A stretch of 35,957 nt of DNA, taken from the NCBI GenBank assembly GCA_900088475.1, contig FLMG01001713.1, positions 1 to 35,957 on the forward strand, read 5' to 3'. The notes under the pieces were generated by a model. That model was not told the origin of the DNA and ran no database searches. It was given only the letters and a program-made list of their open reading frames with translations. Of this stretch, positions 12,746 through 35,957 are shown one piece after another (position 1 is the stretch's first letter; every line of letters starts with the position of its first letter). The translations under genes and the position numbers were made by a program. The DNA is from Hyphochytrium catenoides (Eukaryota; Protista; Hyphochytriomycota).

Positions 12746-14422
12746 CTATCTTGCTTGAAGAGCTGCCCCAACGACAAATAAACCAACGAACGGGAAAAGG
12801 TTTGGCAGTGAGTGAGTCCCGGCTGCACTGCCCTCGGCTTTCTCTCCGTTCGTTGTCACGGGCCTCTCAACCGCGGCATCAGTTTCGTTCTTACTCTTCG
12901 ATCTATCAGTGTTATGAGCTACACTTCCTTGCTTCTTATCGGCAGCAAACTCTGTTGCAGGGGCCCTCCAGCTCTTTGCATCTTGACATTTCACTGCTTG
13001 TGAGCCATCCACAGGGATATGCGCACAGTACTCCTCTTTCGAGCCACCACTCAACGGCTTTGTGAAGGTCTCCGCCCAGGTCCAAGCGCTGTCGTCAGGC
13101 GATAAGAATCGGACCGTGGCCCATTCGGTGCCGAAATACATCTCTGTGTAAGCGTAAATTCCGCCAGACCTCCACACGCTAGCAGCGCCAGCGCCTTCGA
13201 TAGGCGCACCAGCACTTTCTGCGGTGATACCACCTCCTGAACCATCCATCAGATAGTGGACCTTGGTCGCATCTTGATAGTCATGGGAGGGCGCGTGGGT
13301 ATGGCCACACAGGAAGATATTGACTTTCCCCTTTATGGTCTCTGTGAGGAGCTTAAACTCTCTGCTCTGGGGATCAAAGTGTCTGACAGGGCAATAGTGG
13401 GAGCTCACCACCTTCCAGGTAGCTTGGGACTTGTCCAAGTCCGCTGCGAGCTTCTCCATCGACTCCTCGAACCAGCTTTGGATACATCGGCACAAGCTTT
13501 GAAGATGTTCATCGGTGCACAGAGCTCTGAGCCAGGTGAGGCGTCACTGCACAGCCCGCACTCTACTGCTGTCTTTCCCCCATCTGGGCAAGTAGCTTTG
13601 ACTTTCCCACCGTAGCCATAGCATTGACAGCAGATGTCTTTGACTCCGTGTACACTCGCGACATTGGTGTCCACTGTGTAAACATCCACTGTCACCCCGT
13701 TCTCTTCGAAGGATTTCTTATAGTACGCGCCCTCGAACTTCCACCGACCTGTCCTCGATCTCAAGCTGTAGTCCTTCTGTGCGTTAAAGTATTTCATCAG
13801 CGCCTCCTTGGCCTCATCAGCTGATGTACATTCCTCGTGCCAGCGGTCGTTCATCTTGGTCGTTCCTCGGTCTGTGCCGCATAGGTAGTGAGAGCCACCG
13901 AGGTCGTGATTCCCCAAGCACATAAGCCAGGGAATGTTCATTAGCGAGGGGGCATTATACTTGTCCTCGAAGACGGCTCTGAACATCTGGGAGTCTGGGT
14001 TAGCGACGCCGTCCCAGTAGAAGTTGTCTCCCTGTGTAATGACGGCTTTTGGCTTGATGTTGGTGGCTGAGTCTCCCATTAGGGCGGCGATGGCATCCTG
14101 GGCGTGCCACTGACGCCACCAGCCACTTGAGCCGCAGGCCACAACCCTTGTGATTCACCCCTGAGCCCCACCCTGGCTCGCCCTCTTCGGTGAGAGCTGC
14201 AGCACACATTGGATTCCGTGATTTCTTAGTCTTCGGATCCTCGTCTTGTGCTCCCTGTCCCGCGACAGTGGCGCCAAAGTCGCCAAGAGTAAGGAAAGTA
14301 AGAGAGCCATAGTCCTTGTTCGTGGCGGGTGGAGGCGTCACGACTGGGGCCTTTCTTGTGCCGCCGATGGCGCTGGGGAACGCGAGGCCCACGGTAAGGA
14401 TAAGGATGTCTTGCAACCGCAT
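12746..14422 (-). CDS. Secreted, probably GPI-anchored calcineurin-like metallophosphoesterase (purple acid phosphatase / tartrate-resistant acid phosphatase 5-like), about 558 aa; frame broken twice (near 14150-14105 and near 13484), so either a recent pseudogene or assembly indels
   Basis: Signal peptide MRLQDILILTVGLAFPSAIG. All five PAP metal-ligand motifs occur in order across three consecutive ORF pieces: GDFG, GDNFY, GNHD, VSSH, GHTH. There is a Cys-rich insert (DICCQCYGY), an S/T/A-rich linker and a hydrophobic C-terminus (LFPFVGLFVVGAALQAR). Confidence 0.85.
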
Positions 14423-14841
14423 GACTCTGATTTGCCTCTGTCTCGAGCAGCTTTTCTCTCTCCCGGCTGTCACTCTCTTCTCTCTCCTACCCGGCAAATT
14501 ACTTCTTGCCACCCTAGCACCAACCACGAAGGAAGCAATGAAAGATTGAAGAATCGATAAGACGGGTGTGAAGATAGTATCGGCAGTGAAGCCGTCTCTT
14601 GAAAGGCAAAAGCAAAAGAAAGAGTAGTGGGGAGACAGCCTTGACACGGTTGATGCCTAGCTCCCTTGCCGCCCTTGCCGCATGAATGACGGAAAGACTA
14701 ATAGGTTATAGCTTTCTATTAGTCGGCTCGCATGCCTCGTTACGCTTTACCCTATCTGGCGCTGACGAACATTTTCTTTTCATTCTAACTCTCGGTCTTG
14801 TCCGACTCCCGTTTCTTCTCCCACCTTCCATCGTTTACAAT

Positions 14842-19418: not shown

Positions 19419-20843
19419 ATGGTCCGCGCCAAGCCTCTTTTAGCGGCAGTGGCGACGTTATTGTTGCAGCTGTTGGATGCCGTGCAAGCGCAAAGTTCTG
19501 CGTGTTCGTCTCCCTGTGTCATTCAGGGAGGAGGAGGTACATGCGCAGGTTCCTGCCCAGAATATCCTTGCCGGGTTCCTGCTGCCACAGCGGGCTCTGC
19601 GGCGCCCTATGACTGTTATGTGACAAATCAAGGGCAGTGTGAGAATCTTTTCGGCTTTGGTCCAGTTCCAGGCGTTGTTGACTGCAGAAACAGCGCCAGC
19701 ACGCCTACCGTTGCTCCTAGTCCGTCCCCCACTCCTCCGCCACCCCCAACCCCTACCCCTTCTCCTCCTTCCTCTCCGCAGCCTTCGCCTTCCCCCGTCA
19801 CAAATCCAAAGCCAGAGCCACTTCCCAGTCCATCGCCAAGCCCTAGCAAAGGTCCACTTCAACCTCCTCCGTCTCCGTCTGCTCCTTCTCCCTCAACTAG
19901 CGAAACCCCGATCGGGCCCTCACCTTCTCCATCTTCTTCCACCTCTCCGTCGCCTCCTTCCTCTTCAGACTCAAATCCTTCCACCAACCCCGGCTCAAAG
20001 GATGCAAGCGTGTTGACTCCAACATCGTCTGCCCCTGGGACAACTCCCGGAGTCACGACTAAAGCTCCAACCTCCGAAGCAGATCCAACTACAGCGTCAC
20101 CTACAGAAGAGGGTGACAGTGAATCATTTTTCAGTTCGACCATTGGCATTACAATGACGGCACTTATAGGAGCTCTAGCTCTCATCGCTATTGTTCTTGC
20201 TTCTCTCTTCTTGATAAGGAGAAAGAAAAAAGGGGCAGCGAGTAAGAGAAGACAAGCCACTGATGCTGATAACGAGGGTGGCAGAGGAGGAGCGGGAGGA
20301 CGTCAAGCTCCACCAATCGTTGTTCTGCCTACGCATCCGGATGCAAACAACGGCAAAACGAACAGCGAGCTTGAGAGCTATCAGGGCTCCAGCATGGACA
20401 CTGCAGGAGGCATCCACATGTCGACCACCCCAGTCACCGCGTATGCCGTCTATGCAGAGGCTTCAAGAGCTTCCGTTCTAGATCCAGCAGCGGCTTCAAC
20501 TAGTGGCAGGCCTGCCGCTGTCACATTAGAACAGAAGATCAGAGAGCTTCAGCGGGAGAGGACAAGGGCGGAGTCCGTTACAGCTCCCGTTCCTGTTCGG
20601 GCACCTTCGTTGACAGAGGACACCGCTTCAGTGGGTCTGACCGATCGGCCTCCAAGCTTCAGCACATTTGACGGTACCGTTGATTTGGACGAGGTGATAG
20701 CCAAACAAGAGAACTATGCACCTACGCCAGAAGATAATTCAATGGGAAGCATGACCACGCATCAAGTATCAGATCTTTCTGGATCGGAAGTGCGCCATGG
20801 GGTTTCAGAAGGGCGATCAGAGCCGTCAGTAATCAACGTGTAG
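19419..20843 (+). CDS. Single-exon type I transmembrane cell-surface protein, 474 aa (signal peptide, 8-Cys domain, Pro/Ser/Thr stalk, TM helix, about 200 aa cytoplasmic tail)
   Basis: Uninterrupted 474-aa ORF with an N-terminal hydrophobic leader ending VQA-QS, a SPSP/PTP stalk, and a TM segment (IGITMTALIGALALIAIVLASLFLI) followed by an RRKKK stop-transfer cluster. Confidence 0.88.
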   Translation: MVRAKPLLAAVATLLLQLLDAVQAQSSACSSPCVIQGGGGTCAGSCPEYPCRVPAATAGSAAPYDCYVTNQGQCENLFGFGPVPGVVDCRNSASTPTVAPSPSPTPPPPPTPTPSPPSSPQPSPSPVTNPKPEPLPSPSPSPSKGPLQPPPSPSAPSPSTSETPIGPSPSPSSSTSPSPPSSSDSNPSTNPGSKDASVLTPTSSAPGTTPGVTTKAPTSEADPTTASPTEEGDSESFFSSTIGITMTALIGALALIAIVLASLFLIRRKKKGAASKRRQATDADNEGGRGGAGGRQAPPIVVLPTHPDANNGKTNSELESYQGSSMDTAGGIHMSTTPVTAYAVYAEASRASVLDPAAASTSGRPAAVTLEQKIRELQRERTRAESVTAPVPVRAPSLTEDTASVGLTDRPPSFSTFDGTVDLDEVIAKQENYAPTPEDNSMGSMTTHQVSDLSGSEVRHGVSEGRSEPSVINV

Positions 20844-21210: not shown

Positions 21211-22361
21211 TTAGAGGTTGAAGGGCAGCTTATCTCCAGCCACGAATTGTCGGGTCACTTGGTCCTTCTCAATGGTGACAAGACGGATGACGCCACCTGA
21301 GGAACCGTCCCGGGCCATAGCATGGGAGAGGGACCGCTTTACGAACTCCTGACATTCCTCTTTGGTCATGTTGGGCCTGTTCAGAGGGCAGCGAGAAATA
21401 CTGATTAGCGCCTAGTGCTGGAAATTTGTACACAGGAACATGTGCCCCAACAAAGCGGCGCTCAAGGCGTCACACGAGAGAGACAGAGAGAGGATGAGGA
21501 GTTCAAACTAACCTGTAGGCTGAGTCCACATAGCCATAGATATACGTGGACCCTGAGCCTCCAATAGCGAAATTCTGCTCGACCATCGCTCCTCCCAGAG
21601 GGATCGAATACACTTGTCCTCCTCGTACTGGATCCCAGCCAGCCACAATGATGCCAGCCATAAGCCTAAGTGGATGGAATAGATTACGCAGCAGAGGCAA
21701 ACATGAGAGAAGAGCAGTTACAATGATGCGGAACCCAGACCGGTGGTGGAAGAAAATGGCCAGCCCTTTAGAAGGAAGGACATAGTTCGTAGTTACCTGT
21801 CTTTGTATTGATAGCAGATGTTCCGGAAGAGATTGGATGCCGTCTTCACCGTCGGCAGCGTCCCTTTCTCGGTTGAGTGGGCAGAAAGATAGTATCGAAC
21901 AATGTCCGAAACGGCCTAGAGGGCAAAGCAATTGGATGAGCCTTTAGTGACAAGCTCTGTATCGGTATGGGAAAGACAAAAGGAGGAACTTAGCCCTGAA
22001 GAAAGCGTAAGGAGACGACACCGTTCTCAAGAGCACTATAAGACATTCCGTATCGAAGTTCATACCTGAGTATCAGCAGCAGAGCCAGATCTACAGCAGT
22101 ATATTCTGTCGTGCACGTAGGTAAGTTTATCACTGACACGGTTGGCTATGTAGGTGCCGGTACTTGTTCTTGAATCTGCCCCAAGCACCACGCCGCCGTT
22201 AAACTTCACCTAAGATGATCGTGTGCGACAGTTAAGCAACAGCTGCAATGCAGACATCAATAGACTGAGCATACCGCCATAATAGATGTCCCGGCATCTA
22301 TTTCATTAGGCTTGAGTCCAGAGTAGAGAGGATCATTATCGGCATTCTCTCTTTGAATCAT
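21211..22361 (-). CDS. PSMB6: 20S proteasome subunit beta type-6 (beta-1, PRE3 ortholog), 222 aa; exons 22361-22275, 22209-22066, 21915-21797, 21665-21513, 21376-21211
   Basis: The propeptide ends in G|TSIMA (catalytic Thr1), followed by [59 protein letters not shown] and [13 protein letters not shown]. It has four GT-AG introns and 669 nt in frame. Confidence 0.96.
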
Positions 22362-23992: not shown

Positions 23993-25453
23993 TCAACAGA
24001 CCATAATGAACTTCCTAGGGTCAAAGCCTGCCTTTCTGGCAGCCTTGCACAGGTTTAGAATACCCTTCCCAGTTCCCCGCGTGTGAGAGATTCCTGGTAT
24101 CTGAAACATGAGGGGATCCGTGCTACTCAGCAATGCGTCCCGTACTTGAACATTGCTCCAGTTAGGGTTATAACTCCAAACTGTAGCTGCAGCCGCAGAC
24201 ACATGAGCTGCGGCAGAGGAGGTGCTTGAGAGGGTCGCGAAGGCCTTTTGAAGGAAGAAGCTGTAGATCCCGCTACCTGGGGCCGTGATATCAACCTCGT
24301 CATTTCTATGCGAAAAGGATGACAGCTTTCTGGTCCAGTCCACAGAACCGACGGAAAGAACAGTAGAATAAGCAGCAGGGTACCAGTAAGGAATTGCTTG
24401 GTCTGCACTACCAGCGGGAGCGACCGTGAGGACACCGTGCACATTGAAGAGCCGGGTGAAGTAAAATCTTTCTGCCTCCGACGCATTATAGCCGCCCACG
24501 TTGGCGTTGATTACCAGTCTTCTACCCTTGACCTGGTTTGCGACAGCCCTGCACCTCTCCGCAGCTCCGATAAGGTCGGACGAGAACGTCCATCTGCAGC
24601 TTGAGCTGCTGTAGACTTGAACATGGAACATGTTGATCCCTGGAGCGACCCCGATACCTCGATAGCCTCCGATAACGCCAGTCGTATGCGTGCCGTATCC
24701 GCACTGGTCCAAACCTAGTCCGATATCTCCACCAATGTTCTTCTGAATCTCTTGGATGCCCGGATGTTCTAGGTCCACTCCCGAGTCAATGACACAGACT
24801 AAAACTTTGGCCCGATTGCCTGAGTTAACAGGCACTACGTGGGCCTTGATAGCGGCAACATTCCATTGAGCAACCTGGAGAGATCGATGACTCTGATTTA
24901 AGAGGCTCTCCGGCGCAGAGGACGGACCCTGTAGATTGGGGTTTACTGTTGAAGCGCTCAGGGCCCTAGTAGGATTTCCAGATTGGTAGCTGACGTGCTC
25001 GCGTACTGAGTCATGCACCACCTTACCAAACTGGCTGAGGCTCTTTATAATAGCTGGGGCCTTCGAGTTTTTTATGTTAAAAGCCTTGATGTTGGCCGCG
25101 TCCAAGCTCGCGACTTCGGTAATATCTCCTTTAAGACTGTTCAGAAGCTTCTGCAATTGAGCACCCTTCGACGCAGTGAGGCCATCGAGGAAGAGCAAGT
25201 AGCGCTGTGCTCTTGCCTGGGCTTCTTGACAGGTGATTCTCTGAGAGGTCCTTGCCATATTGAAGAAGCCCTCTTCAAAGTCTGCTACGAGTCGTTGAAC
25301 ATTGTTTCTGGCAGGAGGCGGCTTAGTGGAGGTTGTGGCTGGGGCATAGGGGCTTTCGGGAGAGCTGTTTGCAGTTACCAAGCTTATTAGCATGGATGGC
25401 AATGTGCATACAGAAAGTGCGGAAAGGACCAAGAAGGACAGATTCGTCTTCAT
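23993..25453 (-). CDS. Secreted subtilisin-like (S8) protein 1, predicted inactive, 486 aa, intronless
   Basis: Signal peptide from MKTNLSF (ATG 25453) and an I9-like prodomain (RYLLFL...). Domain motifs are VCVIDSGVDLEHP, DQCGYGTH (His->Tyr), VAPAGS, YPAAYSTVLSVGSVD, SSFS..NDEVDITAPG and LSSTSSAAAHVSAAAA. Confidence 0.9.
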   Translation of the reverse strand: MKTNLSFLVLSALSVCTLPSMLISLVTANSSPESPYAPATTSTKPPPARNNVQRLVADFEEGFFNMARTSQRITCQEAQARAQRYLLFLDGLTASKGAQLQKLLNSLKGDITEVASLDAANIKAFNIKNSKAPAIIKSLSQFGKVVHDSVREHVSYQSGNPTRALSASTVNPNLQGPSSAPESLLNQSHRSLQVAQWNVAAIKAHVVPVNSGNRAKVLVCVIDSGVDLEHPGIQEIQKNIGGDIGLGLDQCGYGTHTTGVIGGYRGIGVAPGINMFHVQVYSSSSCRWTFSSDLIGAAERCRAVANQVKGRRLVINANVGGYNASEAERFYFTRLFNVHGVLTVAPAGSADQAIPYWYPAAYSTVLSVGSVDWTRKLSSFSHRNDEVDITAPGSGIYSFFLQKAFATLSSTSSAAAHVSAAAATVWSYNPNWSNVQVRDALLSSTDPLMFQIPGISHTRGTGKGILNLCKAARKAGFDPRKFIMVC

Positions 25454-28400
25454 CTTGGATGGCACTGGCACCGCGACTTTGGCGCGGGACAGGAGTAAGC
25501 GGTAAGGGTGGCGCGGGACAGGAGCAAGCGGCAAGGGAAACAAGGGCACGAAGCTGCTGGCGAAAGGAGAGGAATTTGTTGAGTCAGGATGTGTAGCCTA
25601 CTTCTCTCTCACAGGCTGTTGCGCATGTGAGGGTTTCAATGGCATATTTCCTTCTAAAGGTGCCTCTAGAGGTCCCCGGAGATGGATGTCTTTCACCAAA
25701 GTAGTCACACTTTGTAGGTTGCTTCAGGAGGCTACTAGGTCATTGAAGGAATAGAGTGGTTTAAGAACTCTAACTTTGCTGGGTGCCTGCAGGTAATAGG
25801 CTGCGTGACTCCCAGCAGTGAGCCATCAGGCACGATAGGTCAGACATCAAACAGCTTTAACATTCATTAAGTGAGAGATCCGTCAAAAATGGGTCGGGAA
25901 ACAAATTGACGGTGCCTGACCAGCAGCCGCACCTTCTCTGCACTCTGGGTGGAGACAATAGGTTCCATACCCTGCACCGGAAACCCCTGATGAGAGCCTA
26001 GTTAAGACCCACGTACCCGAAGGGTAGGATCTCCCTGTTCTTAGCGATCCATCGTCAGTTTACGAGCCGAACCTGTCTTGGCAGCCACTGTAGTGCTGGA
26101 AGGTGCCATAGGATACGTTTGCTCAGTTACTTCTTCGCACGACGTTTGGAGGCTGTTCTTTGACAGTAGATCGCAGAGATCTTTCTTAGTCGCCCCATAT
26201 TGGGTCACATATACCTCTACGCTGCTGCCATGGTCTTTATAGAATAAGACCACAGGGTAGTAGAACTACCTAGGAGCAAGACCATAGAGCCCTGGATCAG
26301 TAGTATGACTCAGCAACAAAGAGAAGAGAGGCTGATCCGCCCACACTTCTGGTCCGCCCTCTTGACGGTTTATTTCACAGGAGCTGGAACTTCCAAGCGC
26401 CGACTCTGGACTTCGAGTGATCCATTTCTCTCCTTTTGATAGGGACCCTAATCTTCAATCCTTGAAGGAGAGTTGCCCTACTCTATATTCGACTGTTCAA
26501 GCGTAACCAGCAGCTTGGCTAGCATTACCTCTGTAAGATGATGGCGATGATGGAAGGGTCAGGACTCCGGATCCACCGTCACTTTGTTCTGTTCCTAGGG
26601 GGCCCTGGTACAGGTTTGCAGAGCTTGCTGACATGTCTAAGTGCAGTTGAATTTTGGGGTGTCCGAGTAGGAAGTTGAGGATGAATGAAGTCCTTCGCAC
26701 GATCGTTGTTATACTAGTCCTAGCAAATTTTTCAGGGGCTCAGGGGCAATCAGTCCTCAGAGGCATTATTCCTCATCAAAATCAGCGATTCTCAGACTTT
26801 CGGCAGGGAAAACTGCGTATGTTAATCCGGATAATCTAACTCCACTTGGGAAAACAAAGGAGTAGCGCAGCGAAAACATGGTGTGCCGCAGCGTAGAGCA
26901 AGTGGAAGGTAGGAGGAGGTCGCTGGGTCCACTATTCTTCATTGCGTCGTAATCCTTCTCGGTCCTTCTGGCCCCATCCTGATGAAGAAGGCCTCTTATT
27001 GTTTCTCAGTATGGGAGCGGGGCAATGAATGACGAAGACCTTCTTGTACACTTCAAGCTGCTTAGCGAGCGAGCTAATAAACCGTTCGTCATCGTAGCAC
27101 TTGGATAGTACTACATCGACAGGACACTCGGACTACGCCCATAACATGCTCCCAATAACTTCGTCTTGTTTCTCTTAGCCTCGCCCATATTGACTAGAGC
27201 TAGCATGGCTGCCCGACGAGGGCATCAGACCAGACCACGTAATGCCGGTTATACAGCCAGTTTGTAGCAGTAGTCCCATTACCTGTCTCTATCTGTGAGT
27301 TTTTGAATGGCCACGCTTTCTGTTAGTCCCAAGTGTCCATTGATCCCGACCTGGATCAGGATTATAGGACTACACTCTACTTCATGTCCTGGAACCAGTG
27401 CCTGCAGCAGCAGCAGCTGGAAGTTTGGACGCAGCTAGGAAGTTCCTCTCATAGACATTGACCCCCAGCGTCGAACATACGTCCATTCTCCTAGTGGCTT
27501 GCCTTTGAATCCAGCGTCAAACACTATGTATCGAATATCCAAGACTTTCTTGTTGCAGGCAGCCTGATAGGAGAAAACATCGTCCGCCAAGAAGCTCCGA
27601 AGCATTATCACAATCTATCCTGTCACGTCGTCATCTAGGCATGTTCCTCCTGGTCGGCCGTTTCTGGAATGACCTCAGCGCTCTATCACCATGGTGGGGA
27701 AGACTCACCCGGACACGTCTGCTATCATTGATGCACATCGTGGCCATTGATTGACCGGAAGAGTCAGTCCAAAGTTAGGAAGAGAACGCTGTGCTTGTGA
27801 ACTGACTAATACACCCCCTGAAGGATACGGACACACTGCTACTCAAGCGCCACACTCTTCGGCACTCTTCTGCATGTTGTTGGAGCTGGGAGAGCAGGGC
27901 GGTATCGGTGTTGAGCACGACAATACCTGTGCTATGCTCTTTGAGGTTCTACTGACTCGACTTAGCTAGTAAGTGATCGGCTGCCTGCTGAAAGGACTGG
28001 TAAGTGATGGGCGGGCCATATTTCCTGCCGCTATTGTCGCTTGTTATTAGTCTCCCTATGATAAGAATCACCGGGCAGACCACCACCTGGGGGTGGCACT
28101 AAGGCAGTATCTAGCCTAAATTCCCCCATTGCGACAACTATACTAGTAGAAAAGAGACACCACTTTTTCAATCTCTCTCGTCTGTTGCTCGTAGGGTACC
28201 GCTCATTAATCATCATGACAATGCGAGATCATCTGTCTCGCAAAAGACGAAGACCAAGATGAACATAGATAGGTTCTGGGTCATGGTCTGTCCTCGCCGG
28301 GTGTCTTCATTATCAAAAGCACAGCTACTCGAAATAAAAGGGCGTAGCAGAAGGACTGTTTCCTTGTCATCATTGGACCAACTTTCGGATAGTCTCACCT

Positions 28401-29076
28401 TCTTCCCTACTAGCTACGCCTGCTTTAGGGGCTTGCTCGTAAATGATCACCTAGGTAAGTATCGCCATCAAGAGAAGCAATTGCCGCCTTGCCGTGCGCC
28501 GCATTGCGGCTGATTCTAACTCCTCCACGCCTTCAAATGTCGAGTTGAATAATGTCGCTCGATAGCGAAAGATGATTTCCTTATCGCGAGAAGTGACGCG
28601 AAAGCCAACAAGAGGTGTACATACTGGGGCAAGCCTGCTGCCGCCTAGCTCATCTCCGGAACAAGTCGTGTGCCCGACTGGGATCTTGAGCTTCAGTACA
28701 TACCTGCCATGTCGCGACCCGAGTGAAACAGCAAGGTAAGTATTATGGAGGAATTATCCATCGTCAGCAACATAGATGACGTCCGTTCCGCCTTGATTGA
28801 ATATAAGGAAGGGAAGACTGCAGTGACGATTCTTACGCCCGTCTTCCCATGACAATAACTGACGTTCTTTATGAAGCTTTGTACTTTAGAAATAAAAGCG
28901 ACTTGTTAACTCCTAGTCTACCCTATAAATAGAGCAGCTCCCAGCGATCCCAGATCCTATGTCAAGGCTATCACTTGCTGAAGAGGAAGCCGCTATACCA
29001 GAAGAGAGATCGGCAGCACAAAGGACGCCAAGGCTACGCTGCAAATCTTAAAAAACTACTGGGTGCACACTGCCAT

Positions 29077-30983
29077 TTAGAAGCCGCACCATAGCCAAGT
29101 TGGGAGAGCACCCGACTTTTTGGCTGCCTCGCACACGTTGACTAAACCCGCGCCGAAAGTGTTTGAGGGTCCTAAATAAGTGGCCGTGCTCGTCAGTGCA
29201 TCTCTGACTTTAGCACTAGTCCACCCGATGTTATGGCTCCACAGAATAGCAGCCGCCCCCGCCACATGTGGAGTTGCTACGCCTGGACCTGAGATTGTGG
29301 CAAAGGAGTTTGTAGGGGTCGTGGTATAGATTCCGACACCTGGGGCGGCAATATCAATCTGGTCATTCTTTGGAGAGAAAGGCGCTGCTTGATGCATCCA
29401 GTTTATCGCGGCGACGGAGATGACACTGGAATAGCTTGCCGGATACCAAACGGATGTTCCATCTACGTTACTTCCAGCAGTAGCCACGATTAGGACATTC
29501 TTCTTCTCGTAGAGATCCTTAAAGTAGTACTCCTCCAGAGCGTTGAAGTTTCTGCTGACGGCATTGTAGTTGATCACCAGCCTCGAGTTGTTCCTTGCAA
29601 CTGCTGCGGCTCTACATTGCTCAGCAGCGCGGATGAGGTCTGACCCAAAACTCCACTGACAGCTGCCTGAAGAACTATATGCATTGACTTGGTGAATGTA
29701 CACGCCAGGAGCGACTGCTAAGCCTCCAGTTGCTCCAATCACCCCAGTTAGTTGTGTGCCAGAGCCGCAATTGTCGCTCAGGTCTCCAGCTAAAAGCTTT
29801 CGGGAATTGAGAGTGGAAAAGCCGACATGATTACCCTGGGCACCCGTGTCAATAACGCAAATCATAACCTTGCCTGCGTTGAGAGCATTGACCGGGACCT
29901 TGTCTGCCTTTATTTTCAGTACATTCCATTTGGTCCACATAAGCTTGCGGCGGAGCCGCCTAATCCGGTCATCCGCTGGGGATGGTGAAGCTACCTCGAG
30001 GACGGTGGGATGCTTCTCTATGGTAGTTGATGAAGTGACTTGGGAATCATTAGTGGATGGTAAAGTAGAGTTTGTTTCATCACGCTCAAATTCCATCCCT
30101 TGAGCAAGTTTGTCGGTAGATGGTGAAGTACTTTCTGCGGAGGTCGGTGGGGTGGGCTCTGGGGTAGGAGCTGGAGTAGACTCTGGGGTAGGTGCTGGCG
30201 TGGGCTCTGGGGTAGGTGCTGGCGTGGGCTCTGGGGTAGGAGCTGGAGTAGACTCTGAGGTAGGTGCTGGCGTGGGCTCTGGGGTAGGAGCTGGCGTGGG
30301 CTCTGAGGTAGGTACNNNNNNNNNNNNNNNNNNNNNNNNNNNNNNNNNNNNNNNNGAGCTGGCGTGGGCTCTGAGGTAGGTGCTGGCGTGGGCTCAGGAG
30401 TAGGTGCTGGCGTGGGCTCTGGGGTAAGTGCTGGTGTGGGTTCAGGAGTAGGTGCTGGCGTGGGTTCTGGAGTAGGTGCTGGCGTGGGCTCAGGAGTAGG
30501 TGCTGGCGTGGGCTCTGGGGTAGGTGCTGGTGTGGGCTCAGGAGTAGGTGCTGGCGTGGCCTCTGGCGTAGGGGCTGGCGTGGGCTCTGGGGTAGGTGCT
30601 GTGATCGGACCACCATCCCACGTCAACGGAGGAATCTCCTCCGGCAGGGCCAAATTCACAGCGACCTGCTCATATTGGCTGTCATCAACGACGGTTGCTA
30701 CCTCTTTAAGCTGCTTAAGGAAGTTTTGGTCCTTTTTTTTAATCTTGATAGACTTGAACTTGACAGACTTCACGTCAACAACCTCATCGCCCTTGTCCTT
30801 GTTCCGGCCCCTGACTTGATTGTACTTTGCTTCGTCTTTTACCTGAATTAGGAGGCGGTCACGAGCAGGACGTTGTTCTTTCCGCTTCTTTAGAGTGGCG
30901 GCGGTGGCGTTCGACAAGAGAGTGCTCAACGTGATAATTGTTAGTAGCAGAAGGCATAACTTTGAGAAGAGGCTCTTTCCCAT
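29077..30983 (-). CDS. Secreted subtilisin-like (S8) protein 2, predicted inactive, with a long (APTPEPTP)n linker; one gene spanning the N gap 30316-30355
   Basis: Signal peptide [28 protein letters not shown] and prodomain (DRLLIQVK...). After the gap the repeat reads in frame into [13 protein letters not shown] and the S8 domain: [51 protein letters not shown]. Confidence 0.88.
30148..30600 (-). repeat. Coding 24-nt tandem repeat encoding (APTPEPTP)n, at least 17 units
   Basis: The unit GGGGTAGGTGCTGGCGTGGGCTCT (+ strand) occurs about 10 times above and about 7 times below the N gap. Confidence 0.93.
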
Positions 30984-32257
30984 GTTTCCAGCGAGCGCGC
31001 TGGCTGACCAGCTCTGTGTATGAGAAAAACACCCTAAAATGGTCTTCACGTGAGACGAAAGTTGTCAAATTGAAAATGATCGTTCAAGACGGAGGATGGA
31101 TGGCAATCCTCCGACCGTGTGGATCCCCCAAGGAAGAAGACTTCGTACCATAGAAAGAAATGGATGCAGAAGGTAGAACTGCCTATGGATTCTATCAAGC
31201 TTAAATGAAGCATTGCGAGCAACTGGACCCTGTTATTATCGGACAAGATGAGCAACGCATCTCCCGACTCGCTTCCCGACCTCCTTCCTGCCGTCAAATT
31301 TTTATCGGGAGAGAAAGGGAGGACTGAGAACAAAGAGAGAAGCGATATCCCAAAGATTCTCTTGCCCCTTTTTCTAATGCAGGCGTCTGAGCTTTCTCTC
31401 CTTGATCGGCCTCCTCGCTCATCCCACGCTCTAGGTCGAGCCTAGTAGTTCTACCATGACCGACAGGCAAGAATTTCGATCTTAGTTAGTCTTTCCTCAG
31501 TAGAACTCTTGCTAGAAGGACTCTCCGCCACAGACCACCTGGCAGTATGCGTATATATATTCTATTGGGCTCAACGTGACCGACTCCGAAGCACTACCGT
31601 TTATGACCTTCAGGTTAGGTTTTACATTATCTTGTCCCTCTCTCTAACTGGCGGAAGACGACTCCTTTGTACAAATTTTCTCAGCATGCAAGCGTAATAA
31701 GGTAATAATCCTGCTGGTTCTATTTCTTTCATTTTATAATCAGCTGATGATAGTCAAGAGCGAGTGGCAGAGCTCCTGAACCCGTGAGATTTTCAGTGAA
31801 AAAAAGTGTTAGCTCTTGTCTTCTAAGTTCTTCCCGCTCCTCTTCTATTCCTTTTTAACGCCGTCTAAAAAAAAAGAGAGTTTTCTTATCAGGTAAACCC
31901 TGCCTTCTTCTCAGCCCAGCTGCCATCTTCTTGCCTGCATTGCCTTTCCCTATGTTCTTCTTTCTCACAAAGTGGAGACCAAGGTGGAGACATCAAGTGG
32001 TAGAACTACTACTATCAAGCTTCATAGACAGTAAAGGCTTCAGCCGAGAAGTAAAGTCAGACTCTGCAAAGAGCATCATGGAGACGTGTAGAGCTACTAT
32101 TTTGCGCGACTGGATCACTCATAGAGAGAAGGAACTCTCTATTTTGTTCACAAGAAATGTAAGCCCGACTAAGATCCACTGGCTGGTTTCAAGCCGCTGA
32201 CATCTGTTCAAGCAGTCAATAGTTGGGGACACCTAGCACGCGCCATTTAGTTCAACG

Positions 32258-32680
32258 TCAAAAGATTCTCGCTACGCCTGCCACGGCGGCCGTGAGGCCA
32301 TGAGACACCCTTTGGTTCAGACCACTGATGCTGGTGAGCGAGCCTTCCACTGTGCTAAAAATCGGACACAGTGAAGTGGTAGTGGTGTCTGGGAGCATCA
32401 GTATCGTGATCGAGCCACTGCGACCGTGATGGGTCGCTCTGTGTTCAGCACCGCAAAGAGGCGTCCGGCAAAGGTGGCGATACACATTGCTCTCTTGTAG
32501 AGTGGATACACAAAACTTGAGAGCTCTCTCGCAAGCTCTTTTTAACTCTCGCTTCTGTTCTTGGTTGCTTCTTATTGCGATGTACCAAGAGTAGTTATAA
32601 TCCATAGGAGCTGGCAAGAGGAAACTTAGAAGCCTGGCCTTGTTGCATGCAGCAAGCACCCTACGCAAGCACCAAGCTCA
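32258..32680 (-). mobile_element. Possible decayed non-LTR retrotransposon fragment (region C-terminal to the RT core)
   Basis: WCLRRVL...LLSFLLPAPMDYNYSWY...QKRELKRACERALKF...YRHLC resembles the LINE ORF2 pattern L-R-R-L...P-x-L-D-Y...W...L-E-R-x-Q-x-R-A-L-R...Y-x-x-L. No RT core motif was seen. Confidence 0.35.
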
Positions 32681-34782
32681 AAAATGGGCTGGGAATTAAT
32701 ATTAAGAGACAGGGATCCTCAAGCAGTTTTATAGTCAGGGTCTCTCAGCCTGGGCCTCTATTACTAGATCAGGAGCCACGTTGTGAGCATCCTCACAGGT
32801 TGGCAGCTTATCCTCGGAAGTAAGGCGTCTCATCGCTTAATTTGACATCTGAAGCCACGCAGGTAAAGCCAAGCATGCCATTCGAAGTCAAGCTTACGGA
32901 GATGCAGGTTGCGGCTCATCTACGCAGCAGTAGTGTACACAAACAAAGCCGTGATCCCACCAAACACTGCTAACGCCAGTCAAAACCTTCGCGATTGTAG
33001 CCCTATTAGCTAACCCCTGGTCATGCAGTACTACTGAGAATTGGTTTGCGATCACTAGCAGTAGGAGCAAATCCGCCCTGCATCGCACAGATTACTTTCC
33101 ATGTCTTTTAGGTTGGAGGAGGCTGTCCCCAGGGCTTGAGAACAAGAAGTTGAATCAACTTTGTCGAAGCTATCTTTTAGAGGAGCTCGGCGATCTGTGC
33201 CTCTCCCTAACTTGTATGCAAGCCCCCCATTAGCTGAGGTCTCGGGCTTTTGGACGACATCACGCTCTAAAAATAATTCAACTGGATTATCAAGCGGTCA
33301 GACCGTTGTCTTCAGCCAACAGTCCTTTGGCGTTTCGATCCTTTGGCCTCCCGATCCCTGTTTGCCTTGTTGACCGTCGTCCTCAAGCTCAGAACGCAGG
33401 TATTGCGCGGGTCTTCTATTGCTACCCGCGAAGAGCACGATGTAAAACAACTAGACTAGGAAGTTGCAAGACAGGTAGCTAGATAGGCATACGTGTGGCC
33501 TTGGCCAACCAGATGTAGGCTTTAAGGTGGCACTTGCGCTACCTTGTTGAGGGTACAATGATGCTATTATAACCTTGAATGGAGTTCTCCAATTCAGAAC
33601 TGGGTTTCCTTATGGTGTTCCTGCAAGAGCTCTATTATCCTGATCTCCTTCATTCCTTCATTGCTGCTAGGGGGTAGACTACGGCTGATGAATGGAGAAG
33701 GTTATAGTGGAGACTTAGTCGGTTATGTAAGGTGGAGATGGCGAGGTAAGAGACCATAATAATAGACGGTCTCAAATAACAAGCTGCGGTCCCGCCCTGC
33801 TGCCTTGAGAAGATTTGGCAGACATATCTCATCGCGCCAGCTTGTTGGTCTAGTTTCCCTGTCGAGCCCTTTCTATATATCAGTAAGGACTTTGACTAGC
33901 CTGCCAATCTCCCTGAAGTGTCTTCGACAAAGAGTGATTGAGAGCGAAGCTACCGCTCGAAAGGGTTACTACTTATTGACCTCCCAGTGCAACCTCAAAT
34001 CTTCATGGGGGAGTAAGTGCAACCCAATTAACGACAAGAAGAGCTTCTAAAGGAGGTGGAATGAAGACATTTAATAGTAAGATCAGAATGTGAGAAAGGT
34101 GAACGACACACAAGAGCACCATGATGACCAGGTCTTACTAGATACACCCAGGACTCTTCATAGTAGCCTTCACCACATGTCACAGCGAGTTAGTGCTTTG
34201 GCTGAGAAGGCTGCGACGGTGCCATAGAAGAGCACCACTGCTTGCTATCAGGCGGTCAGGCGGTCGACTAACTCAATAGCCACCTTTGGACGCTGTTAAG
34301 TGGTATGCGCCCCGACTCTAAACGACACCGCGGCTTGTGATCCACCTCCTATATATAACTTCAACCAGAGTTGGAAGGTAAAGCAAGCTTCTTCAAGGTG
34401 AGACTTTAGGATTATAGAAGATGACGGCAAAACGACGGTTATTGCCCCCCTAATAATAAGAAAGGCAGAATAACGATGGCTTCTCCTATCTCCACCCAGC
34501 TGACACAGATCTGTGAACTGCTACTCTGCAGCATATGAGGAGCCTGTCAGCATGCAGTCCCAGTTGATAATAGATGAAGGCATAGCCTCTTTATTAGTTC
34601 AATGAAGAAAGATGAAGGCCGGTTATCGTCACAAACTTCGATCATTTGCCTTCCTTTCCTAAGAATATCAGAATAAAATCTTTTCATCGGTCATTCTTGC
34701 GACTTTTTCCATATAATAAGCATCAGGGACCAGAAAATGGGAGCGCCCATTCGCGACTAGGGCAGCAGGTCCCATTACCAGC

Positions 34783-35957
34783 CTAGCAGTAAACCCAGAA
34801 ATACGGGTCGAAGCCTGCTCGTTTCGCTGCATTGCAAACGTTAACCAAACCGGCACCGAAGGTGCTATCCCATCCTGCCACTCCTAGATCGGAAGCAGTG
34901 CTGAGTAAGGCATTTCGAACCTGTGCACTCGTCAGCAAGGGGTTATAACTCCACACCACAGCTGCGCTTGCGGAGATAAGCGGAGCAGCTATTCCTGCAC
35001 CCGACACTGTAGCGTACCAATGATAAGGCGTGGTAGTATAGAGCCCTACGCCTGGCGCTGCAATGTCAATCTGGTCATTTCTAGGGGAGAATGATGCAGC
35101 TTGGTTGAACCAGTCAACAGCAGCTACCGAGATGACGCTGGAATAGCTTGCCGGATACCAAACAGAGGTCCCATCAGCATTTGAGCCTGCAGGGGCCACT
35201 ATCAAGACGTTCTTGTTGGTATACAGATCTCTGAAGTACCAATCTTCAAACGCACTGTAGGTCCTGCTGACCGCGTTATAGTTGATTACCAGCCTTGCGT
35301 TCTTCGCTACGGCAGCCTGTCGGCACGTCTCTGCCGCTCTAATGAGGTCCGATCCGAAGCTCCATTGGCAGTTGCCAGATTGGTAGACGTTGACGTGATA
35401 CAAGAATACGCCTTTCGCAACGCCGAAGCCGCCGCCTGCTGCAGCCACTCCAGTGACCTGTGTGCCCGATCCACAACTGTCAGTTGCCCAGTTATTGGAG
35501 CCGCTGAAGTACTGCTGTGTATCCCAGAATTGCATATGATCCTTCTGTACGCCGGAGTCTATCAAGCATACCAGGATTCTGTCTCTATTGACCGCTTTAA
35601 GGGAAACCTTGTCTGCCTTTATTTTGCTAATGTACCAACTCTGTAAGAAGAGGGATAGTTCGCGTCGAAGATGGCGGTTGGTTGGAGCCGCATCAGTCGC
35701 TGGGGTTGTCTCCGTTGAAGGTCCGCTTGGGGGTTGCTCTGTAGGAATATCAGCAGGAGAAGTCGCGTTGTAGCTCATGGTGAGTTGTTCATAGAGGTTG
35801 TCAGTGTGAACTGTAGCCGCGTCCTCAAGCTCTTGAAGAAACGCTTTGTCGTTCTTCTTGATCTTCAAGGCCTTCACTCCAAGGTCGGGGAAGTCGTGGA
35901 CCTGGTCGAACTTGTCGTTGTGCTTATCCTTCATCTTACCAAACTTTTTGCTGTCCT
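34783..35957 (-). CDS. Subtilisin-like (S8) protein 3, predicted inactive; 5' end lies beyond the window edge
   Basis: The frame stays open to the edge (DSKKFGKMKDKH...) and aligns with the prodomain of protein 2. Domain motifs are [53 protein letters not shown] and FGAGLVNVC. Confidence 0.9.
   Translation of the reverse strand, partial: DSKKFGKMKDKHNDKFDQVHDFPDLGVKALKIKKNDKAFLQELEDAATVHTDNLYEQLTMSYNATSPADIPTEQPPSGPSTETTPATDAAPTNRHLRRELSLFLQSWYISKIKADKVSLKAVNRDRILVCLIDSGVQKDHMQFWDTQQYFSGSNNWATDSCGSGTQVTGVAAAGGGFGVAKGVFLYHVNVYQSGNCQWSFGSDLIRAAETCRQAAVAKNARLVINYNAVSRTYSAFEDWYFRDLYTNKNVLIVAPAGSNADGTSVWYPASYSSVISVAAVDWFNQAASFSPRNDQIDIAAPGVGLYTTTPYHWYATVSGAGIAAPLISASAAVVWSYNPLLTSAQVRNALLSTASDLGVAGWDSTFGAGLVNVCNAAKRAGFDPYFWVYC

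Follow-up and report, generated by a model that had tools for sequence, protein, structure and literature searches.

Three tandem subtilisin-like genes of Hyphochytrium catenoides as probable exported pseudoproteases

The window considered here, that is, the whole analysed stretch of 35,957 nucleotides from Hyphochytrium catenoides, contains three tandem genes of the subtilisin family (S8), none of which encodes a complete Asp-His-Ser triad. The locus thus raises the question of whether these genes are decaying relics, unusual peptidases, or functional genes whose products do something other than cleave proteins. Pseudoproteases are common in genomes, and few of them have been studied. In this work, we consider it probable that the genes, denoted g1, g2 and g3, are old tandem duplicates that lost catalysis stepwise and encode functional exported pseudoproteases, which would act by binding; this reading builds on four observed properties, namely gene integrity, substitutions, fold and selection.

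All three genes are free of introns and co-oriented on the minus strand, and no stop codon occurs in the coding frames. The first, g1 (23993-25453, minus strand), is a complete, intron-free gene of 486 codons plus a stop, recognised from its open reading frame (ORF) and a match to the Pfam family PF00082 (Peptidase_S8; E 9e-29). Its product comprises, in order, a signal-peptide-like N-terminus, an I9-like prodomain, a disordered linker and the S8 domain. The second, g2 (29077-30983, minus strand), is delimited from ORFs, from the reading of the flanks of an assembly gap and from a PF00082 match (E 3.6e-26); it consists of a signal-peptide-like N-terminus, a prodomain, a long gap-interrupted Pro/Thr repeat linker and the S8 domain. 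The third, g3 (34783-35957 and beyond, minus strand), is recognised from a PF00082 match (E 2.6e-30) and the alignment to subtilisin Carlsberg. It has 390 codons within the window, which encode the C-terminal half of the prodomain, a short Pro/Thr linker and the S8 domain; its frame is still open at 35955, and the gene continues past the window end, so that its N-terminus and signal peptide lie outside. The matches of g1-g3 cover positions 3-288 of the 288 positions in the PF00082 profile. The intergenic spacers measure 3.62 and 3.80 kb, in agreement with the initial annotation, which reported three co-oriented S8 genes about 3.6-3.8 kb apart with uninterrupted catalytic domains. Its description of all three as intact holds in that no stops are present, but g3 exceeds the window and g2 is split by a gap of 40 N (30316-30355). 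No Rfam families, tRNAs or Pfam domains were found in the spacers, which show no similarity to each other, and no further S8 copies or relics occur within the window; the array has exactly three copies.

The gap in g2 lies outside the catalytic domain, within a repeat of 24-nt period (30148-30601, minus strand) that encodes PTPEPTPA units in about 19 copies as assembled. This repeat, identified by Tandem Repeats Finder, a repeat search and the sequence itself, forms the linker that joins the prodomain to the S8 domain. The N-terminal ORF, which starts at an ATG at 30983-30981, ends with ...PTSEPTPA, and the S8 ORF starts with VPTSEPTPA; the repeat unit and the peptide register are the same on both flanks. 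With 40 N in place, the reading frames on either side of the gap are offset by one base. Because this gap length is an estimate, the simplest reading is a single ORF across the gap, and we regard the continuity of g2 as plausible.

To describe the active sites, we number residues by alignment to subtilisin Carlsberg. Asp32 is retained in all three copies with the codon GAC (24785-24787 in g1, 29848-29850 in g2 and 35557-35559 in g3; here and below on the minus strand). The His64 position holds Tyr in g1 (TAC, 24695-24697) and Ser in both g2 (TCT, 29761-29763) and g3 (TCG, 35467-35469), and the oxyanion Asn155 is replaced by Ser throughout (AGT at 24407-24409 in g1; 29470-29472 in g2; 35182-35184 in g3). 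At the Ser221 position, g1 keeps Ser (TCC, 24218-24220) in the motif S-T-S-S-A, and g2 (GGC, 29281-29283) and g3 (GGA, 34993-34995) have Gly. The states at the four positions are, therefore, D/Y/S/S in g1 and D/S/S/G in g2 and g3; in terms of the triad, His is gone from every copy and Ser from two of them. All residues and coordinates given in the initial annotation, which had suggested the alignment to subtilisin, are confirmed in this way, and the scaffold motifs quoted there (YPAxYSxVxSV, DIxAPG and WSxNxxxxxxxVRxAL) are present. Its view that the active sites are dismantled is correct for His64 and Asn155 in all copies and for Ser221 in g2 and g3, but not for the catalytic Ser of g1, since S-T-S-S-A aligns to G-T-S-M-A. 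Sequencing reads, also suggested there as a check on the catalytic codons, were compared over 23993-29992 (g1 and the S8 domain of g2). A contig of run X1, which is possibly the assembly's own data, spans 23993-25302 of g1 with 4 differences, none of them in a catalytic codon; in the metagenome runs X4 and X5, the matching pieces are only about 230 nt long, which is insufficient for dN/dS between orthologues.

The alterations extend to the substrate-binding strand: M124-S-L-G-G128 has become A-N-V-G-G in g1 and Y-N-A-V-S in g2 and g3. Among the 102 nearest relatives, positions 125-128 are S in 100%, L in 91%, G in 94% and G in 85%, and H64, N155 and S221 are conserved, like S125, in 100%; it is these same positions that are altered in the array. 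Between g2 and g3, the cleft segments have 75% identity versus 58% elsewhere (p 0.035). That is, they are more conserved than the remainder, and there is no sign of diversifying selection.

These properties of the cleft bear on the idea that g1-g3 are decoys that soak up canonical inhibitors (Kazal, I9 or serpin-like) of a host, prey or competitor and thereby shield active paralogues. The products do look like exported, catalytically dead derivatives of a secreted protease, and an analogy is provided by the GIPs of Phytophthora, secreted pseudoproteases of the S1 type that bind host enzymes. Canonical inhibitors, however, bind in a substrate-like manner to strands 100-104 and 125-127 and the oxyanion hole, and g2 and g3 read N-A-V-S at 125-128, where Val127 should, from general structural knowledge, fill the S1 pocket. 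The decoy idea is weakened for these two copies because the cleft strand S125-G128, to which inhibitors bind, has been rewritten; in addition, the conservation of the cleft segments is not what an arms race would be expected to leave. We therefore consider this explanation unlikely.

A structure model was made for g1. In this AlphaFold2 model, the mean pLDDT is 79.9, with most of the S8 domain above 90. A Foldseek search with this model gives unautoprocessed pro-subtilisin E (3whi) as the top match, 3whi_B having 414 aligned columns and a TM of 0.82 by target, and the subtilisin matches in general have TM values of 0.81-0.86 by target. The prodomain of g1 (residues ~75-152; 24998-25231, minus strand) is modelled as a beta-alpha-beta-beta-alpha-beta unit (pLDDT 84-94) that packs against the S8 domain in the manner of pro-subtilisin; Pfam Inhibitor_I9 gives no match at the E 0.01 cut-off. 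The fold of g1 is thus modelled with confidence and resembles that of pro-subtilisin. As to secretion, g1 and g2 have N-termini that resemble signal peptides by eye, six Cys are conserved throughout the clade to which the genes belong, and no transmembrane segment was found in g1-g3. From the N-termini and the Cys set, we infer that the products of all three genes are exported; the initial annotation, which called them secreted, is supported in this respect for g1 and g2, but the N-terminus of g3 lies beyond the window.

A second alternative is that g1, if not the others, has remained a peptidase, using a non-canonical general base or substrate-assisted catalysis, and that a genuine loss of activity is confined to g2 and g3. 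In addition to Asp32 and Ser221, g1 retains the G127-G128 pair and His67, and its linker has S-H-R-S ahead of the S8 domain, where a cut after Arg would put His at P2. In an engineered subtilisin in which His64 was changed to Ala, Carter and Wells reportedly found that a His at substrate P2 partly substitutes for His64. In g1, however, the His64 position is occupied by Tyr rather than a small residue, the oxyanion Asn is Ser, and both Gly219 and Met222 are replaced by Ser; to our knowledge, no natural S8 enzyme with this arrangement is active. An active g1 appears quite improbable on these grounds.

Whether the array is maintained as a set of functional pseudoprotease genes can be judged from the pattern of substitution. 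Synonymous differences between the copies are saturated (pS 0.73-0.78), compared with a pN of 0.24-0.39. Maximum likelihood gives omega values of 0.03-0.08, which are bounds rather than estimates since dS is saturated; for most pairs, NG86, LWL85 and YN00 fail or saturate. Under neutrality, 885 nt would remain free of stops with a probability of 1e-4 to 1e-6 per pair. Columns with a family-wide conservation of 80% or more are invariant across g1-g3 in 58% of cases, versus 23% of the variable columns (Fisher p 1.3e-6). Among 40 of 220 allelic variants that are listed, 10 are synonymous and 8 non-synonymous, and those in the S8 domain of g1 comprise 6 synonymous and 2 non-synonymous changes. Neutral decay after tandem duplication, which would make g1-g3 non-functional pseudogenes and could account both for the loss of catalytic residues in all three copies and for the absence of their proteins from public protein collections (likely because the genome is unannotated), is very improbable given that 390-486 codons remain without stops or frameshifts despite saturated synonymous sites, that chance openness has the low probabilities above, that pN is well under pS with core family columns preferentially conserved, and that synonymous changes predominate among the allelic variants listed for the S8 domain of g1. 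Since g2 and g3 share the His and Ser losses, their divergence wholly postdates those losses. The evidence thus supports diverged paralogues kept by purifying selection rather than decaying pseudogenes. The proposal in the initial annotation that such selection acts on a non-proteolytic role likewise finds support in ORF survival, the core columns, the g1 fold and the suggested pairwise dN/dS comparison, which gave values far below 1, at saturated dS; the specific roles listed there (inhibitor decoy, adhesin, wall component or regulator) would be candidates only. On the g1 branch, part of the constraint could predate the catalytic loss.

The order of events is suggested by the relatives, the useful ones of which came from an exhaustive profile search. 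Word-indexed protein searches, in which the very large S8 family filled the 8000 candidates considered, gave, among the matches listed, only relatives of at most 39% identity; a metagenome scan using the clade's own motifs gave nothing above 37% identity, and no exact match to g1 turned up in public assemblies. In the tree, the copies group as {g1,{g2,g3}} with support 100/98, and they lie within a 100/100 clade that nests among bacterial-type subtilisins and includes their two nearest relatives: P0080, a metagenomic homologue that is predicted to be active (D-H-N-S), and P0085. A search of relatives for active members had been advised initially, and P0080 is such a member in the same clade. 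P0085 (KAJ3416216.1, a hypothetical protein of Chytridiales sp. JEL 0842) is the nearest named relative. It resembles g1-g3 in its six Cys, C-terminal motif, signal-peptide-like N-terminus and catalytically dead state, but all four positions are replaced, by other amino acids than in g1-g3 (S/I/D/T), and it occurs as a single copy among arrayed I9-plus-S8 genes that are more distantly related. An AU test on a loss shared by P0085 and g1-g3 gives p 0.31.

Among characterised proteins, the subtilisins Carlsberg and BPN' and pro-subtilisin E (MEROPS S8A) are the best sequence matches (E 2e-30) and share the core motifs, and pro-subtilisin E (3whi) also matches the g1 fold best, prodomain included. 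The array differs from active subtilisins not only in the catalytic replacements but also in the replaced S125-G128 strand, the six clade-specific Cys and the long linker that separates the prodomain from the mature domain. Subtilisin-like pseudoproteases are already known in CspC and CspA of Clostridioides difficile (PMC7200643, PMC6636752), which share the S8 fold, arose by duplication beside an active paralogue, and act by binding and signalling. CspC has Thr170 at the His position and Gly485 at the Ser position, and its prodomain is uncleaved (PMC7200643); a small hydroxyl residue for His and Gly for Ser is also the pattern in g2 and g3, and prodomain retention without autoprocessing would be a further likeness. 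In contrast, CspC and CspA belong to the Csp clade and are intracellular proteins of bacterial spores, and they have no signal peptide, Pro/Thr linker or conserved set of disulfide Cys. Membership of the clostridial Csp family was considered and rejected: no Csp entry appears among the 60 top-ranked solved structures listed for g3, which comprise Carlsberg, BPN', savinase and further subtilisins; the genome looks eukaryotic; and a chytrid protein and environmental subtilisins are the closest relatives. The catalytic loss in g1-g3 is independent of that in Csp.

A eukaryotic parallel is PIMMS2 of Plasmodium, a subtilisin-like pseudoenzyme located between SUB1 and SUB3 (PMC5520436). It, too, is an exported or surface-located protein of a eukaryotic microbe encoded in a tandem subtilase locus, with degenerate HGT and GTS motifs; in PIMMS2, these vary among orthologues, and the triad residues are largely dispensable for the function of the protein. 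However, PIMMS2 belongs to the apicomplexan SUB lineage and carries a transmembrane domain as well as a C-terminal extension, whereas all three neighbours in our array are catalytically dead by sequence and lack a transmembrane segment.

Taken as functional exported pseudoproteases, g1-g3 may have arisen as follows. The ancestor would be a secreted protease gene of bacterial type (true subtilisin, S8A) in a eukaryotic microbe, which underwent an old tandem duplication. His64 and the oxyanion Asn155 would have been lost before the three copies split, and Ser221 and the substrate-binding strand S125-G128 later, on the branch ancestral to g2 and g3, with purifying selection keeping all three genes afterwards. 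The products would be exported, disulfide-stabilised proteins of subtilisin fold that bind rather than cleave, perhaps with a regulatory role in extracellular proteolysis. Because the triad is not working, the I9-like prodomain could not remove itself; it would either stay attached via the flexible Pro/Thr linker, as in CspC, or be removed in trans.

Calling the array an undescribed system, as was done initially, is an overstatement in view of CspC/CspA (PMC7200643) and PIMMS2 (PMC5520436): it represents no new kind of system. Nevertheless, homologues likely to be inactive were expressly excluded from the main survey of serine proteases in fungi (PMC5567314), and exported dead subtilases of zoosporic fungi and protists are consequently essentially undescribed. 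A further-reaching and doubtful suggestion is that the array encodes a small family of exported protease mimics, specific to its lineage, with which an early-diverging fungus-like microbe controls proteolysis outside its cells, for instance through binding of the prodomains, inhibitors or substrates of active paralogues, and that the long Pro/Thr linker evolved to reach a folded, prodomain-bound end state without self-cleavage; in a sharper variant, g1 would be a case of natural substrate-assisted catalysis. Within 12 kb, the locus offers an ordered series from g1, which keeps Asp and Ser, to g2 and g3, which keep only Asp and have a rewritten cleft, with an active D-H-N-S relative found elsewhere. 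As all members of the array are under constraint, it may serve as a convenient natural series for studying how the subtilisin scaffold is repurposed, and what becomes of a prodomain once its removal by self-cleavage is lost.

Three co-oriented minus-strand open reading frames, designated g1, g2 and g3, occupy the final 12 kb of the window. g1 (23993-25453) is complete, with 486 codons from its ATG; g2 (29077-30983) is read as two pieces on either side of an assembly gap; and g3 extends from 34783 to the window end, with its frame open at 35955 and its N-terminus outside the window. Pfam Peptidase_S8 is matched end to end by all three (E = 9e-29, 3.6e-26 and 2.6e-30 for g1, g2 and g3), and among solved structures the top matches are to subtilisin Carlsberg and BPN' (E ~2e-30). 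No fourth copy or relic was found anywhere in the 36 kb window. The intergenic spacers (3.62 kb and 3.80 kb) showed no similarity to one another, and searches of them for domains, RNA families and tRNAs found no recognisable one. A 29-nt unit occurs in two tandem copies (93% match) at 25480-25537, immediately upstream of the start codon of g1. None of the three genes has introns, in contrast to their neighbours in the window, which appear split.

In g2, a run of 40 N (30316-30355) falls within a tandem array of 24-nt period (30148-30601, ~19 copies) that encodes PTPEPTPA units. The N-terminal frame (ATG 30983-30981) opens with a signal-peptide-like segment, followed by a prodomain, and runs into the gap as ...PTSEPTPA, and the S8-domain frame leaves it as VPTSEPTPA.... 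As assembled, a one-base frame offset separates the two halves; however, since the 40 N are merely an estimated length and the same repeat lies in the same peptide register on both sides, a single continuous gene is the simplest reading. The gap does not affect the catalytic domain, whose start lies ~350 nt further downstream.

Active-site residues were called by alignment to subtilisin Carlsberg, a three-way alignment of g1-g3 and codon look-up, which together confirmed every coordinate in the initial annotation. In BPN' numbering, Asp32 is retained in all copies (GAC in each); His64 is Tyr in g1 (TAC) and Ser in g2 (TCT) and g3 (TCG); Asn155, the oxyanion residue, is Ser throughout; and Ser221 is Gly in g2 (GGC) and g3 (GGA). 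The earlier description of all three active sites as dismantled holds for His64 and Asn155 in every copy and for Ser221 in g2 and g3, but g1 keeps the catalytic Ser (TCC), because its S-T-S-S-A aligns to G-T-S-M-A. An exhaustive profile search supplied the 102 nearest relatives for comparison; columns with 100% conservation in them but altered here are H64, S125, N155 and S221, with G219 also altered in g1. Along the whole substrate-binding strand (124-128), M-S-L-G-G has become A-N-V-G-G in g1 and Y-N-A-V-S in both g2 and g3. Judged from these columns, both the catalytic chemistry and the canonical peptide-binding strand are lost.

Such losses might mark neutral decay, but the pattern of divergence argues for selection, as initially proposed. 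Synonymous differences between copies are saturated (pS 0.73-0.78), and non-synonymous differences range from 0.24 (g2-g3) to 0.39. Pairwise maximum likelihood gives omega 0.03-0.08, and NG86 and LWL85 give ~0.19-0.20 for the single pair with finite dS, all of these values being bounds rather than precise estimates. The most constrained pair is g2-g3; since these two share Ser64, Ser155, Gly221 and the Y-N-A-V-S strand, all of their divergence postdates the loss. With ~3.5-4% of single-base changes creating stops, a single lineage at the observed divergence would keep 885 nt open with a probability of 1e-4 to 1e-6. Core columns are also retained: of the 96 columns with at least 80% conservation across the family, 56 are invariant in g1-g3, versus 20 of 87 variable columns (p 1.3e-6). 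Between g2 and g3, identity in the rewritten cleft segments is if anything higher (36/48) than in the remainder of the domain (138/237; p 0.035). By these sequence measures, g1-g3 are not decaying genes.

An AlphaFold2 model of g1 (pTM 0.79) has an S8 domain mostly above pLDDT 90, preceded by a confident N-terminal beta-alpha-beta-beta-alpha-beta unit (pLDDT 84-94) and then a disordered linker. Its best Foldseek match, with TM 0.82 by target over 414 aligned columns, is unautoprocessed pro-subtilisin E (3whi), so in the model the putative prodomain packs against the catalytic domain in the manner of a pro-subtilisin. The Pro/Thr/Ser-rich linker between the prodomain and the S8 domain has grown to at least 150 residues in g2. 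By eye, g1 and g2 have signal-peptide-like starts; six Cys are conserved throughout the clade, and no hydrophobic tail was found at the C-terminus. Residues, constraint and fold thus support the core of the initial reading, that of intact pseudoproteases under selection.

The g1-g3 proteins themselves were not found in public collections. The exhaustive search, which covered 1.84 billion representatives, returned only two close relatives: P0080, from a metagenomic Logan contig, with D-H-N-S intact, and P0085 (KAJ3416216.1), a hypothetical protein of Chytridiales sp. JEL 0842 whose four catalytic positions read S, I, D and T. In a maximum-likelihood tree, {g1,{g2,g3}} (support 100/98) lies within a 100/100 clade that includes both. 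This five-member eukaryotic clade is nested among environmental and bacterial subtilisins, and a Chloroflexi MAG subtilisin ('Subtilisin Carlsberg precursor') is among its sister sequences; an ancient gene transfer from bacteria is possible. The tree order implies stepwise loss. His and Asn would have been lost first, ahead of the three-copy split, with the His codon able to pass from CAY through Tyr TAC to Ser TCN by single steps; Ser221 and the cleft strand would have been lost later, in the g2/g3 ancestor. An AU test of whether P0085 shares the first loss favoured neither alternative (p 0.31). P0085 lies within a seven-S8-gene array of the chytrid genome (JADGIY010000017.1, 1-14200), in which its six neighbours have introns and Inhibitor_I9 domains and are distant (E 1e-10 to 1e-22 versus the clade profile); it is therefore a dead bacterial-type subtilisin among more distant I9-bearing subtilase genes.

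Contigs of two organism DNA runs (X1, X2) show two haplotypes, and the spacers carry many indels. Across the g1-g2 spacer (25600-29100), one version is identical to the window and the second differs from it by dozens of substitutions and by small indels, and has segments of 63-108 nt replaced, with joints at 25729/25793, 26808/26875 and 27203/27312; the two look like diverged haplotypes of a heterozygous diploid. Among the variants listed (40 of 220), 18 lie within g1 and g2; 10 of these are synonymous (6 versus 2 non-synonymous in the g1 S8 domain) and none of them hits a catalytic codon, although one run may be the assembly's own data. Short g1 contigs (25088-25322 and 24129-24357; 100% and 97% identity) occur in metagenome runs X4 (2021) and X5 (soil, 2025), so the organism or a close relative is present in environmental samples.

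Elsewhere in the window, a minus-strand frame just downstream of g1 (21503-21931) matches part of the Proteasome subunit profile (PF00227, E 1.3e-8) and probably represents a single exon of a spliced housekeeping gene. Overlapping minus-strand frames at 12746-14647 weakly match calcineurin-like phosphoesterase (PF00149, E 5.5e-5) and are probably a spliced metallophosphoesterase gene. A 474-aa plus-strand frame (19419-20843) has no Pfam match; its language-model features resemble fungal Ser/Thr-rich wall-sensor proteins (Mid2, WSC and CFEM clusters, score 0.88), a weak lead.

Going by their residues, g2 and g3 cannot hydrolyse peptide bonds, and g1 almost certainly cannot. The products would be exported subtilisin-fold proteins retained for a binding role. 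Since autoprocessing fails in catalytic mutants of subtilases (PMC7200643), either the prodomain stays attached, as the long flexible linker would permit, or another protease removes it. The best-studied analogue, CspC of C. difficile, has Thr in place of the catalytic His and Gly in place of the catalytic Ser, where g2 and g3 have Ser and Gly; its prodomain is left uncleaved and it works as a signalling partner (PMC7200643). PIMMS2 of Plasmodium is a eukaryotic pseudoprotease within a tandem subtilase locus (PMC5520436). The products may have a regulatory or binding role toward active paralogues, or a role in the wall or matrix. Of the roles initially proposed, that of a decoy for canonical inhibitors is a poor fit to g2 and g3, given that the strand bound by such inhibitors is rewritten. 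Subtilisin-like pseudoproteases are a known class, of which g1-g3 are new and independently arisen members, and they place a tidy stepwise series of catalytic loss in a single locus.
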